Shown here: positions 26,031 to 57,600 of the stretch, in pieces
How the letters are laid out: every line of letters begins with the position of its first letter
Numbering within the stretch: position 1 is the first letter of the stretch
Assembly: GCA_965649825.1 (NCBI GenBank)
Contig: OZ287711.1
Span: forward strand, 293,201-357,200
Reading direction: 5' to 3'
DNA length: 64,000 bases
From: Penicillus capitatus
Lineage: Eukaryota; Plantae; Chlorophyta
Made by a program: the position numbers and the translations under genes
The notes under the pieces: generated by a model
The model's database searches: none
What the model was told of the DNA's origin: nothing
What the model saw: the letters and a program-made list of their open reading frames with translations, nothing else

Positions 26031-27303
26031 TCATCGTGTACGCGGTTCGATCGTCACAGCTCGAAGCTGAGAAGAAGCTGCCAGAGCTATGTCATAGCGA
26101 CCCGTCTCGACGACGGGAAAGAAATCCGTCTCCGGAATGGGCTCCCTCACATCCCAATGCTCTCCACTTGTACTGTGACCGGATCGATGCGCCAAACCGT
26201 CTGCCGCACGTCACATCATGTCACACTTGCAGCGCACAAAAGAGTGAGATTACCTGAGCGCGATTTGGATTCTCTCCACCAGCGATGGTAGACATCATCC
26301 GATTCCTTACGCCAGTTCTCACCCCACTTCGCCATCTCACACTTATCCTCCAGAAACGCCTCCCATTTTTCTCCCCAGTGCACTACGCCGCCGTCAAACA
26401 CATCTTCATACCACTACCGAGGCACCATCAAAAAGAGTGAGAAATGGAGTGATGCCTTGTCTGTCCACAGATTTCCGTTTCCTTCGTGATCGATCTCATC
26501 TCCCCAATTCTCGTGCCATACGCCTGTCCCTTTCTTTCCCCATTTCTTACTCCATCGTCGGCTACGACCGTCCTTCACAAAGTACTCCTCCCATGCCTCC
26601 TCCCACTCTTCCTCCCGATCCGGATCGCGACACCATCTAAAGAAGAGTCACTCAATGCAGCCTTCTCACACTTTGCTGCTGTACTTAATGCACGTCTTGT
26701 GCAGGATGTGCGAGTGGAGCACGCTATCGAAGTACATTTTCTCGATCCAATGCTCTCGCCATGTCTTTCCGTCGCCATCGCCGCCCGATTTCTCCGCGCC
26801 CAGTTCCTTCAGTCCATTCCAATCGGACGCATCCCACCACGATTCCTCCCACAAGATCTACACAAGTGCCTTCCATGCACCCAGCTACGCACGTACGCAC
26901 CTTTTCGGCGCGGTTCACAGCAACGGTCGTCACCGTTGTCTTCCTGAATCCCTCCTCGCCGCGGAGCTTTGTCACCGTCTGACGCGTCTGGACATCGGAA
27001 GGCGGCAGTCGACGCACGACGTGTCCGCGGTGGATTCCGGAACCTGGATCGCGTGTCTCTCTTAGCCGCGGCACCGTCAACGTCCTGTCAGACGGGCGCC
27101 TCTCCTACGCCACTCCGATTCCGTGGCTTCCCTCGCCACGCGTCACACCTTCAGCGCGCGGCACAAAACGCGTTTCCATAAGCGCGATCGCCACAAAGCG
27201 CGACAGCCAGCTTCTAAGCGCCACGGCGTCGCGGATCGAGGCGGGACGCCAGCTGTTCGCATCGGTACCTGCAGCGATGCCTGTCAGCCTCAGTCGCTGT
27301 CAT
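26031..27303 (-). CDS. LESV: ESV1/LESV-family Trp-rich starch-granule protein (multi-exon; start uncertain)
   Basis: Spliced Trp-rich domain: WEESWWDASDWNGLKELGAEKSG..WREHW..WHENWGDE..WTDK|W..WGEKWE..WGENW..SGEHWDV..SQLRAV. Introns include 26201-26253 and GC-AG 26414-26455. Closer to LESV than ESV1 by eye. Confidence 0.85.
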
Positions 27304-27438
27304 CCTCCTGAAAATACCTCCACAATTCCCACCACGTCATCGTACTTAAGAACGAACAGACCGACTGTCTTCGTTGCGACTATCTTCATCCAGCACTCCG
27401 CGTTCGTTTTCTATCATAACAAACAGCTTCCGTTCAAA

Positions 27439-54600: not shown

Positions 54601-57600
54601 AGACGAATCCGTCATCTCTACTGCGCCGTCAGGTCCCGCCGGCGACGAAGATGTGTGGATTCCGCCCGGTGCTCTGACAGAAGGGCAAAGCGCAGCGTGC
54701 GACGGTCGTTGGTTCAGAGTCGCGTTGGCAGAACACACAAGCGTCGTCCAGGAACGCTTCCGTCTCTTTTGCCAAGAAAGTGAAGATACCGCCATGGCGT
54801 TCTCTCCTCAGGTCTGCTTCCTACTCAAAACGCAAGCGTGTTTGGCAAGGAGGCTGCAGATCGTGGGTGAGCACCTTCAGATGCTGATGCACGTCCTTGG
54901 GCAGAAAGACGAGGCGTCGCTCGTTTTGACCGGCGCGTGGGGATTGGGCCGCCGGACGATGGTTCGTTTCTTGTGCCATTGTCTCGGCTACCGTTTCCGC
55001 ACGCCGTTTGCCACACAAGGCTTCGCTTTGCGGCATTTCGCGGCGTTTCTCAAAGACGTCTTGGTTGAAGCCGCTATACACGGCAACCGTGTCTGTCTCT
55101 ACCTAGACGAATACCAGATCGTCGACGAACGGATGTTCGATCACATCCACGACCTCCTGAGCTCAGGAGAGGTCCGCCGAACGGAGCCTCTGCTTTGGTA
55201 ACGTCTGTTGCCTAGGTTCCGGGTTTGATACGAGAGGAAGACCTGCAGCCGCACCGCGCTGTGCTGGGATTACACGGCACCGTTCGCCTTGCCGAATTGA
55301 AGAGCGTCTTCGCCCAACGCGTCCGAGAGCACCTTCGTATCGTGCTCAGTTTCGCCAGCGATGCCGCGACGGTGCAGCGACGTATGTACAGCTATCCAGC
55401 GCTGCGAAGGAAGTGCTGGTGGAAGCATCTGATGCCGTGGAACGACGAGACGCTGGAGATGGTGGCACGTCACATCATAGATCGGGAGCTGTCGAATCTG
55501 GACGACGCGAAAGAGGCCGATGCATTGGTGAAGGGCATACTTCAGATACACCGCGCCCGACCGCACCTCTCCGGGCGGCGGTTTGTCGCGTGTGTGCGTC
55601 TGTTTTGTCGACTGGCTCGCGAAAACGCAGCGGATGTCCAGAAAAGGATCACGTTTCTTAAAGTACAGCGCTGAAATGTGTGCCCTGGATGTCGGGGATG
55701 CTTTTTGGAATGTAGTCTGGGCTGTCGAAGTTGGCCGAGGCAGAGGAAGAGACGCAGGCCGCCGCAGCGGAGATCGCTGAACAGCGGGTTGAGCTCGAGG
55801 CGAAGCAGCGAGCGGCAGAAGACGCCCTCGAAAAGATCGCAGCGTCAATGTCCTCGACGGCCGAGCGCAAGCAATGCGCAGACGACCTACGGTTGAAGCT
55901 GCAGACGGAAGAGGTTTCATTCTTTGCTACCGAACGTACCAACAAGGCATGTCTCGCAGGGGACGCTAGGCGATCGGAGGTCCTGCGTGGAGAACGAACT
56001 GCGAGAAGTGCAGCCGATGATCGATGCGGCGAGGGAGGCAGTGGGATGCATCCGATCGGATAGTCTAAATGAGATCCGGTCGCTCAAGATGCCGCCAACG
56101 GCGATCCGAGATGTCTTGGAAGGCGTTCTGATGACGCTCGGGCAGCGAGACATGACATGGAACAGCATGCGACGGTTCCTCGCGAGCAAAGGCGTCAAAG
56201 ACAGCATCCTGAACTTCGACGCACGTTGCATGACGAAGAACTCCGTGATACAGGTCCACTCGCTCTCGACTGCCGAGCATTGGAGGGGGATCGAGGTGTG
56301 TTAGGTGGAGAAGCTGCTGGCGGCGAAAGGGACGTCGTTTGAGGAGGGAGTGATACGGAGAGTGAGTGTGGCGGCGGCGCCGTTGGCGGCGTGGGTCAGA
56401 GCGAACCTCGCCTTTCGACAAGTGGCATTTCGAGGGGCGAGTGTCCGAGAGACGTACGTCGCTGTCTAGGCATTGGATTCTGTCCGGCCGCTGGAGGAGA
56501 AGCTTGGTGACCTGACGGATTCGCTCGAGTGTATGAAGGGTCAGTTAGAGACGTGCCAGGTGGAGGTGCAATCCCTTGAAGAAGAGGTACGCAGGACTGT
56601 CGTAGACGTTTTGCTTTTATTTTGGAGTTTTCAGACGGTGACGCTAAAGACGGCGTTTCAGAAACGCACGGGAGAAGCCGAGTGTTTGAGAAACGACGTG
56701 GAGAAGGCGGAGAGCCGTTTGACCGCGGCACGGGATCTGTTGCGCAATCTTTCGGAAGAGAAAGCGAGATGGGAACAGACGTTAAGCGAGCTGACCTCAG
56801 CCGCCAGCCAAACCACACGCCGTGCGCTTCTGGCGGCTGCATACGTCAGCTACCTTATCTCCGAAGAGCCTCACGACAGAAGAGTGACGACAAAGGTATC
56901 TCACTCTTTGTGACGTCTTCGTACGTCAGCCGCCGGCGGCGGTTTCAGGAATGGTCAGTTTGGCTTGACGTGCCGGACTTTGATATCTCCCGTCTGGCTG
57001 TGATAACGACAGCGGCGCCTTCCGAGACCATCTTACCAGATACGGTCTCGGGCGAGAATGCGTTCTGCCTTCGGACGAGTGTTATCTCACCTTTCATCGT
57101 CGATCCGTCATCCCAGGTGCCGTCCTGCCCGACGCCGCCGCCACCCGGAGCATAGCCTTAGGTGATGTCATGGCTGCCGGCGATGCTCGAGAGACAAGGC
57201 GCAGCGGTGGAGGTGCATTCTATGTCCGATTCCAAACTGAACAGCGCGCTTGAACGTGCCGTGCGTTTTGGAAAGACGCTTATTCTGACCGATGCGGAGA
57301 GAATCGATCCGGTGTGCATCGAGGCGCTGAGATCGAGATTCGGAACGGCCGAGAAGATTCACGTCGGTCAGCGTCTTGTTGAAGTGCACGAGGCATTCCG
57401 CCTGTTGATGATCGCCTCGGACGATCGGCACCTCGAGGCGCATCTCAGAGATCTCGTCGCCGTCGTCCACTTCGCCTTATCCGCTGTGGGACTCGAAGGT
57501 GCCGTTTCGTGATCGCGTTTGCCACGGCGAAGTGGCGGCTGTTACAGAGAAGCTCCTGAATCTGGCGATCCAGGTCGCCTCACCTGAAGTGGAAGGCCAC

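Follow-up and report, generated by a model that had tools for sequence, protein, structure and literature searches.

Short-motif intron enhancers beside weak donors include the U-rich sites of TIA-1, Nam8 and UBP1 and the G-triplets of small vertebrate introns. Introners carry inverted repeats and bring a gc or gt donor with the element (PMC11282704), and the introner families IE-A3 and IE-A4 contain the donor-like sequence AG/GTGAGAC (PMC3879977; here and below a slash marks the splice junction). The BOC1 introns of Mamiellophyceae are shorter than 75 nucleotides (nt), numerous per gene and bounded by GT-AG with some non-canonical ends, have no discernible branch motif or signal, and are AT-rich (<43% G+C), a drop in G+C that is thought to mark them (PMC3879977). 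In the nonconventional introns of euglenids, complementary short sequences near both ends of the intron can form a stem (PMC11282704). Here we analyze a 10-nt word, TCTCACTCTT, that recurs with its reverse complement in the short introns of a 64-kb stretch of DNA (termed the window, the whole stretch analyzed: 64,000 nt, about positions 87182-151181 of the 236.7-kb metagenome contig ctg340102 in ENA assembly ERZ25074695).

At stake is the recognition of very short introns without a donor consensus, branch motif, pyrimidine tract or compositional contrast, a question raised earlier for the BOC1 introns of prasinophytes. The word is a real, lineage-specific and partly conserved feature of the window. 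Using its positions relative to modelled splice sites, its conservation in a related genome and its clustering with inverted and direct partners, we tentatively interpret TCTCACTCTT(TT) and its complement as lineage-specific, cis-acting words of pre-mRNA (precursor messenger RNA) splicing in an alga with signal-poor introns of about 50 nt.

An over-represented word in intron-rich DNA

Sixteen exact copies of TCTCACTCTT, nine on the plus and seven on the minus strand, span positions 26240-56908 (Table 1), each at the coordinate and on the strand given by the original prediction, and the near match noted there is GCTCACTCTT at 25221-25230. No exact copy occurs in 1-26239 or in 56909-64000; where the word is missing (1-25 kb and 61-64 kb) introns are missing too, whereas non-coding DNA is not. 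Dinucleotide shuffles of the window yielded a mean of 0.16 copies and a maximum of two, and Markov models of orders 1-4 predict 0.17-0.36 copies. Only with orders 5-6, models that learn the motif itself, does the prediction rise to 1.7-5.4 copies, so that the excess holds against a higher-order background. With one mismatch allowed, 37 matches were found where 6.4 are expected. In the intron-rich genes of the window the word and its reverse complement are about 100-fold over-represented, and by automatic gene models the word is about eight times denser in introns than in exons.

Extended to the 12-mer TCTCACTCTTTT in 11 copies, the word ranks first among the 10-, 11- and 12-mers of the window, and the complement AAAAGAGTGAGA is its commonest 12-mer (11 copies). 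At the RNA level the pair comprises a pyrimidine strand, UCUCACUCUUUU, and a purine counterpart, AAAAGAGUGAGA; the mRNA-sense complement reads AAGA/GUGAGA and contains GUGAGA, a good donor. Literature searches with the word matched only primers and unrelated sequences, and Rfam returned no match in the window at gathering scores and none in 37400-38150 at E-values <=5.

Short introns with few signals

Introns were modelled by comparison with a relative represented by two contigs of ENA assembly ERZ26696514 (ctg303800 and ctg303728; loci L002/L003 and L085), which are colinear with the window over 25.3-45.9 kb, 48.3-64 kb and 41.1-61.4 kb and about 83% identical to it. These contigs, from the same metagenome (1.3 Mb with 118x coverage and 0.68 Mb with 98x), are mutually 97.7% identical over 20 kb and may represent two of the relative's haplotypes or strains; the phylogenetic depth of all comparisons is one species and its 97.7% identical second copy. 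None of the metagenome contigs scanned for closer relatives exceeded 46% protein identity. Codon-usage and two-species gene finders over-chained genes, and could not separate the strands because the antisense strand of coding DNA is also periodic; only short introns of a two-species reading-frame model were kept, on the condition that GT/GC and AG are conserved in the relative, giving 47 candidates. Introns bearing the motif were checked by hand for open conserved frames in both species, stops, insertions or deletions, and homology. Exon mapping with five full-length dynein homologues was too coarse (25-44% identity, with segments running through in-frame introns), although it did confirm introns 51865-51908 and 56896-56948.

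The 47 candidates have a median length of 50 nt (range 38-71) and a G+C content of 0.577, against 0.57 in exons and 0.56-0.59 in the rest of the genes. Their consensus is limited to (A or C)AG/GT and YAG/G; positions +3 to +6 lack a consensus, a pyrimidine tract is absent and the branch position is not conserved. As a class, their folding is slightly better than that of exon controls (mean z -0.40 versus 0.02, p 0.02). The two-species alignment, of about 36 kb, contains no gap of 21 nt or more, and therefore no intron was gained or lost between the two species. GC-AG introns are unusually common (about 5 of about 75), and most begin GCATC.

Strand-specific positions relative to splice sites

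Independent gene models reproduced the breakdown offered by the original prediction, with 11 intronic copies (7 sense and 4 antisense), 4 exonic and 1 intergenic. Told relative to the genes, eight copies are sense (seven intronic, one exonic), seven are antisense (four intronic, one at a donor, two exonic) and one lies in an untranslated region (UTR) or intergenic DNA. The starts of the seven sense intronic copies all fall between +4 and +14, in the 5' part of introns of 42-53 nt (sign test 0.008), and all seven copies have the T-run, versus one of the four antisense intronic copies (Fisher 0.024). Of the seven introns with a sense copy, three have a GC donor in one species or both, against about 2 of 70 other introns (Fisher 0.004; denominator counted by hand).

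Antisense copies, which read as a donor-like purine word in the mRNA, are placed differently. In three of the five exonic copies GAGTGAGA begins at +14, +15 or +18 after an acceptor (41416, 42024 and 51908, respectively), always in the frame AGT-GAG. The intronic copies are poorly conserved repeats, and after three of them another (A/T)GTGAGA word follows within 10-33 nt. The copy at 51459 coincides in the relative with the donor of a 45-nt GT-AG intron (L002 3175-3219) that has an in-frame stop. In the window 24 nt remain (51463-51486), in frame and ending ...CAC/GG without an AG acceptor, and L085 likewise has CAC; the intron has either been partly deleted and exonised or has a non-canonical acceptor. 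Elsewhere, at 44420-44470, the tandem GGTGTGAGAAGG TATAGTGTGAGAAGG AAGTGTGACC presents three successive donor-like GTGAGA/GTGAC words.

Strand-specific position relative to splice sites, as expected of splicing enhancers, is present in 7 of 7 sense intronic and 3 of 5 exonic copies, small numbers that refer to modelled introns. Orientation independence, as first proposed, holds for the counts (8 sense, 7 antisense, 1 UTR), and positions and the T-run differ between the orientations.

Table 1. Copies of the word, related introns, other recurrent words and genes of the window. Intron positions are counted from the donor; "relative" denotes the two related contigs.
Feature	Position	Strand	Setting	Partners and state in the relative
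Sense, intronic	26240..26249	-	minus-strand gene; starts at +5 of 53-nt intron 26201-26253 (CAG/GTAATCTCACTCTTTTG...GCGGCAG/)	inverted partner AAGTGTGACA 21 nt downstream in same intron; relative reads TCTCACACTT (one change)
Sense, intronic	26433..26442	-	starts at +14 of 42-nt GC-AG intron 26414-26455; flanking frame conserved on both sides; internal stop in both species	word not conserved; relative keeps a U-rich stretch
Sense, intronic	29543..29552	+	starts at +8 of 53-nt intron 29536-29588	12-mer identical though remaining intron diverged; inverted partner AAGTGTGACA 15 nt downstream
Sense, probably exonic	34366..34375	+	EMC1, GGA TCT CAC TCT TTT (GSHSF); frame open in both species	15/15 nt identical; adjacent codons differ
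Sense, intronic	40263..40272	+	starts at +9 of 49-nt first intron 40255-40303, hemerythrin/CHY gene	donor GAA/GTGTGAC is imperfect inverted partner; core CACTCTT kept
Sense, intronic	41986 (block 41986..42046)	+	starts at +12 of 50-nt intron 41975-42024	inverted partner TTGAGTGAGA in next exon (LSET); word reads TCTCACTCA in relative
Sense, intronic	51871 (block 51865..51935)	+	+7 of 44-nt GC-AG intron 51865-51908; homology segments stop at 51870 and resume at 51912	near copy TCGCACTCTT at 51884
Sense, intronic	56899 (block 56880..56908)	+	starts at +4 of 53-nt intron 56896-56948; donor GT in window, GC in relative	word identical in all three sequences; inverted partner AAGAGTGACG (56880) in preceding exon
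Antisense, exonic	32206..32215	+	minus-strand CFAP58-like gene, AAA AAG AGT GAG ATC (KKSEI)	identical; second near copy at 32239 reads EKESEI
Antisense, intronic	38459..38468	+	minus-strand gene; 55-nt intron 38439-38493; mRNA sense AAAAAGAGTGAGAAACCAAAGTGTGACC from +26	core conserved; relative reads TCGCACTCTT
Antisense, intronic	41395..41404	-	starts at +26 of 47-nt intron 41370-41416	9/10 bases conserved; direct near copy CAGAGTGAGA (41428) in next exon (SQSEM)
Antisense, intronic	41811..41820	-	+12 of 46-nt intron 41800-41845, followed directly by AAGTGTGAGA; alternatively donor AAGA/GTGAGA of a 31-nt intron	8/10 bases conserved
Antisense, intronic	46950..46959	-	starts at +8 of 45-nt intron 46943-46987, followed by ATGTGTGAGA	not conserved in L085
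Antisense, at donor	51459..51474	-	dynein-2 heavy chain gene, AAAAGA/GTGAGATCTCAC	10-mer identical in all three sequences
Antisense, exonic	51924	-	EKSEN	
UTR or intergenic	37752 (block 37737..37765)	+	between convergent genes	perfect inverted partner at 37737 (AAAAGAGTGAcaccgtttcTCACTCTTTT, then CTAG)
Related intron	53154..53205	+	begins G/GTTACACTCTTTTT; word at +2/+3	begins C/GTCTCACTCTTCTT
GC-donor introns with sense copy	26414-26455 (-), 51865-51908, 56896-56948			GC at 56896 in L002/L085
Other GC-donor introns	30373-30420 (-), 52928-52989			
CGCCGCCA, intron examples	31528-31575 (-), 34419-34472, 57117-57161, 58488-58544			
GATGTGAC, examples	39991-39998, 40019-40026, 33527, 33856, 34627, 34705, 53436, 53492			
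Retroelement gag/aspartyl-protease open reading frame (ORF)	626-2449	-	flanks intron-rich block	
NACHT-HEAT (NLR-like) ORF, long, intronless	11992-16929	+	flanks intron-rich block	
NACHT-HEAT (NLR-like) ORF, long, intronless	61034-63952	-	flanks intron-rich block	
CFAP58-like coiled-coil gene		-		
EMC1 gene		+	convergent with a minus-strand gene	
Hemerythrin/CHY-zinc-finger gene		+	first intron 40255-40303	
Dynein-2 heavy chain gene	~47-60.4 kb	+		
PsaO gene	in window			

Conservation and lineage specificity

The loci of the relative have the same k-mers on top and contain 12 copies of TCTCACTCTT in 41 kb; 909 kb of dynein loci from other eukaryotes contain three, the chance level. Aligned 10-mers are identical in 7 of 15 cases versus 27% in local controls, and the core CACTCTT is fully kept in 21 of 28 copies versus 43% in local controls (p 6e-4), with a per-site identity of 0.89-1.00 across the core and 0.6-0.8 on either side. 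Core conservation, like the copy counts, is alike in both orientations. An estimate of identity at third codon positions, which presupposes known exon phases, was discarded as invalid. In a comparison of orthologous introns, as suggested by the original prediction, 6 of 11 intronic copies retain the core against a baseline of 16.7% for intronic 7-mers (p 0.005), and the remaining five are altered or lost, which points to turnover of the word.

Inverted partners and predicted hairpins

Copies of the word tend to have partners nearby. Within 70 nt, an inverted partner accompanies 10 of the 16 copies at 7/10 matches or better and eight at 8/10 or better, the latter versus 13.6% of random positions in the same region (p 6e-4); direct partners at 9/10 or better accompany four (p 0.02). 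There are 12 pairs of the family's core 7-mers less than or equal to 45 nt apart, where 3.0 are expected. The strongest predicted structure joins the sense copy at 51871 with the antisense copy at 51924 by 12 perfect base pairs and extensions (51865-51935); taken over 51862-51940 it has -29.5 kcal/mol and z -4.25, crosses the 3' splice site and has arms identical in the relatives. A hairpin at 37731-37768 (-9.9 kcal/mol, z -2.8) and a fold at 40248-40278 (z -2.2) also exceed shuffles, and several other pairs are weak or no better than shuffles (z -0.4 to +1.3). As a general rule hairpins were rejected, only four of the eight regions tested folding better than shuffles.

The palindrome at 37737-37765 sits in a conserved block between the convergent EMC1 gene and a minus-strand gene. 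Over about 600 nt (37500-38130) this block is about 95-97% identical to the relative, against about 83-85% for coding exons, and is without an Rfam match.

Candidate explanations

In the splicing interpretation the two strands of the word would do different work. Placed 4-14 nt past weak donors, several of them GC, the pyrimidine word UCUCACUCUUUU may serve as an intronic enhancer of donor recognition, most likely bound by a CU- or U-rich-binding protein with RNA recognition motifs (of the PTB or TIA-1/UBP1 kind) or by another trans factor, which would fix the 5' end of the intron. The purine word AAAAGA/GUGAGA is donor-like and could bind U1; it may act as a true donor, as an exonic enhancer (U1-type or purine-rich) 14-18 nt past an acceptor, and as intronic repeats. 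The two words are complementary, GUGAG being the reverse complement of CUCAC, and this makes occasional stems possible: where both lie within 10-55 nt they could pair across a splice site. This complementarity may reflect a common palindromic origin.

Several points weigh against such a role. The introns are models built from reading frames, two-species comparison and weak homology, and automatic models miscalled several; the sample is small (16 copies, seven of them sense intronic). By hand tally only about one third of introns carry the word or a related one, so there is no general requirement for it, and conservation is moderate, with nearly half of the intronic copies (5/11) changed or lost in the relative. 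Enrichment of word and complement together, and the clustering of partners in both directions, is also expected of a double-stranded DNA site or of a palindromic origin, and the four antisense intronic copies have no clear role. Of the readings considered, splicing is the best, though at less than even odds because these antisense copies are partly unexplained, the introns are modelled and the numbers are small. The enrichment, lineage specificity, partial conservation, clustering and placement relative to modelled splice sites are observed; action in RNA and the factors bound are inferred.

A double-stranded DNA site for an abundant, sequence-specific chromatin or transcription factor within gene bodies, close to the DNA-level element first proposed, is an unlikely alternative. 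It would account for the strong enrichment of both orientations with copies in introns, exons and a UTR, for core conservation independent of orientation, for exonic copies identical at synonymous sites in the relative, and for inverted and direct partners at variable spacing, as in homotypic site clusters; copies would persist mainly in introns, coding sequence restricting them elsewhere. It does not predict donor and acceptor positions that are strand-specific and differ by orientation. Nor does it predict the lack of any exact copy in 25 kb of intron-poor DNA that includes several kb of non-coding sequence, or in promoter-like gaps, where another recurrent word, GATGTGAC, does occur. Positions tied to splice sites and to strand favor use at the RNA level over a plain double-stranded factor site.

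The words could instead be relic terminal inverted repeats of ancient, tiny palindromic transposons, akin to introners or to MITEs (miniature inverted-repeat transposable elements), that supplied splice signals in either orientation; we consider this, too, unlikely. Ends of such elements would be GTGAGA... on one strand and, on the other, ...TCTCAC-TCTTTT, and would be kept as splice signals, much as known introners supply a gt or gc donor and terminal inverted repeats (PMC11282704). Association of the words with introns, frequent inverted partners, mini-palindromes at 37737-37765 (AAAAGA/GTGAC..TCTCACTCTTTTCTAG) and at 51463 (GTGAGATCTCAC), the slightly better folding of introns and the hairpins formed by other intron words all agree with this origin. 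The flanks of the 16 copies and about 47 introns are alike only in short words of 10-12 nt, however, and the inverted partners lie inside introns or in exons rather than at both intron ends. By eye, no target-site duplication was found at 37737-37765, 51869-51935 or 26240, the sole candidate being TCC at 29543, and the two-species alignment has no gap of intron size. Exonic copies and variable intronic positions do not fit either. The footprint of a small intron-generating element, as originally suggested, fails on these counts, with no whole-intron similarity, target-site duplications, terminal partners or intron-sized insertions or deletions at 17% divergence, although an ancient intron-generating origin of the words is still conceivable.

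RNA structure by itself, with the pyrimidine word pairing with a purine partner at the donor, within the intron or early in the next exon in a stem that masks or joins splice sites, seems distinctly unlikely and fits a minority of copies. Inverted partners near 10 of the 16 copies, the acceptor-spanning stem at 51862-51940 and the intron at 41975-42024, where the relative's sole change within the word, T to A, lengthens the match to the unchanged exonic partner, all argue for pairing. Several pairs are weak, however, and at 29543 and 40263 the partner is altered in the relative and the word retained; structure alone also leaves the reuse of one sequence across unrelated genes unexplained, and direct partners are enriched too. 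A broader combination, to which we give a comparably small chance, is a self-complementary pair (UCUCACUCUUUU past the donor, GAGUGAGA either at the donor or where the next exon begins) that pairs, or binds one factor or small RNA, and so would define introns of about 50 nt lacking classical signals. Such a system would be the spliceosomal equivalent of euglenid introns that are defined by stems, and an ancient palindromic introner may have seeded it.

That the sense word is a branch point with polypyrimidine tract (CUCA*C UCUUUU, the putative branch A starred) far from the acceptor is very improbable, as first argued: CUCAC fits yUnAy with a U-run directly after, and the putative branch A lies 24-45 nt from the acceptor, the predicted branch motif of canonical Micromonas introns being 43-52 nt upstream of theirs (PMC3879977), but that A would be only 8-18 nt from the donor, the role is excluded in intron 53154-53205, in which the word begins at +2/+3, the majority of introns are without the word, no branch position is conserved, and the 7 of 15 gene-oriented copies that are antisense would go unexplained. 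This reading, too, fits a minority of copies.

Other recurrent words and gene setting

Further over-represented words of the window are GATGTGAC (38 copies), AAGTGTGA(CC) (18 copies) and CGCCGCCA. As functional words AAGTGTGA(CC) and CGCCGCCA were rejected, being intron-enriched but without conservation between the species. With its complement CGCCGCCA reaches 3.5 per kb in introns versus 0.7 per kb, and in some introns it forms hairpins of 8-10 bp, once with GTCACATCA in the loop. The word GATGTGAC/GTCACATC (consensus ccGTCACATCAc) also has 39 copies in the 41 kb of the relative and is much better conserved than TCTCACTCTT, being identical in 25 of 29 cases versus 31% in local controls. Its density is 4.1 per kb in introns and 0.6 per kb in exons, and it occurs as well in promoter-like gaps just upstream of gene starts; at times it is a perfect palindrome (CTGTCACATCAcatcTGATGTGACAG in the relative), and some copies include TGACGT. 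We regard it as probably a regulatory element in its own right, which may be a dimeric DNA site.

Gene content, including a PsaO gene, a CFAP58-like gene and a dynein-2 heavy chain gene, identifies the source as a flagellate green alga. The best solved-structure matches of the PsaO product are PsaO chains of photosystem I, from structures that we take to be green-algal (e.g., 7dz7 and 7d0j of Chlamydomonas). Membership of the Mamiellophyceae appears doubtful, judging from the PsaO sequence, because it is closer to Chlamydomonas-type sequences than to the weaker PsaO matches. The NACHT-HEAT gene adjoining the dynein gene is syntenic in the relative. A Pfam search of minus-strand ORFs at 27-33 kb and 44-46.6 kb was uninformative.

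Comparison with known systems

The word and its complement mark a sizeable fraction of these signal-poor introns at set distances from splice sites, and sense copies accompany GC donors. If confirmed by transcripts, they would be a concrete candidate for an intron-definition code in an uncultured alga, and a possible link between the symmetry of splice signals (GTGAG/CTCAC) and an origin of introns from palindromic elements.

Among the systems described, the introners of Micromonas pusilla (the IE families), Aureococcus and dinoflagellates, MITE-like DNA transposons that turn into introns, likewise place a repeated sequence in many unrelated genes' introns. In their case the repeat makes up the whole intron (about 67 to >200 nt), has terminal inverted repeats and target-site duplications, and is present in some strains and absent from others, whereas here only a word of 10-12 nt is common, its position varies, it occurs in either orientation and in exons too, and the two species have all introns in common. 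BOC1 introns resemble those of the window in being short, numerous, GT-AG and without a branch motif; unlike them, the introns described here have 58% G+C, equal to exons, and recurrent conserved words. With short-motif enhancers the likeness lies in a short repeated word less than about 20 nt past a weak donor, absent from some introns and moderately conserved. Such enhancers are strand-specific and of low complexity, and in this they differ from a specific 10-12-mer whose exact complement is also enriched. The nonconventional introns of euglenids, finally, differ in their borders, which here are GT/GC-AG, and in the place of stems, which here occur in a minority of introns with one arm exonic, but like them the window contains stems that span an acceptor, at 51865-51935 and 41986-42046.

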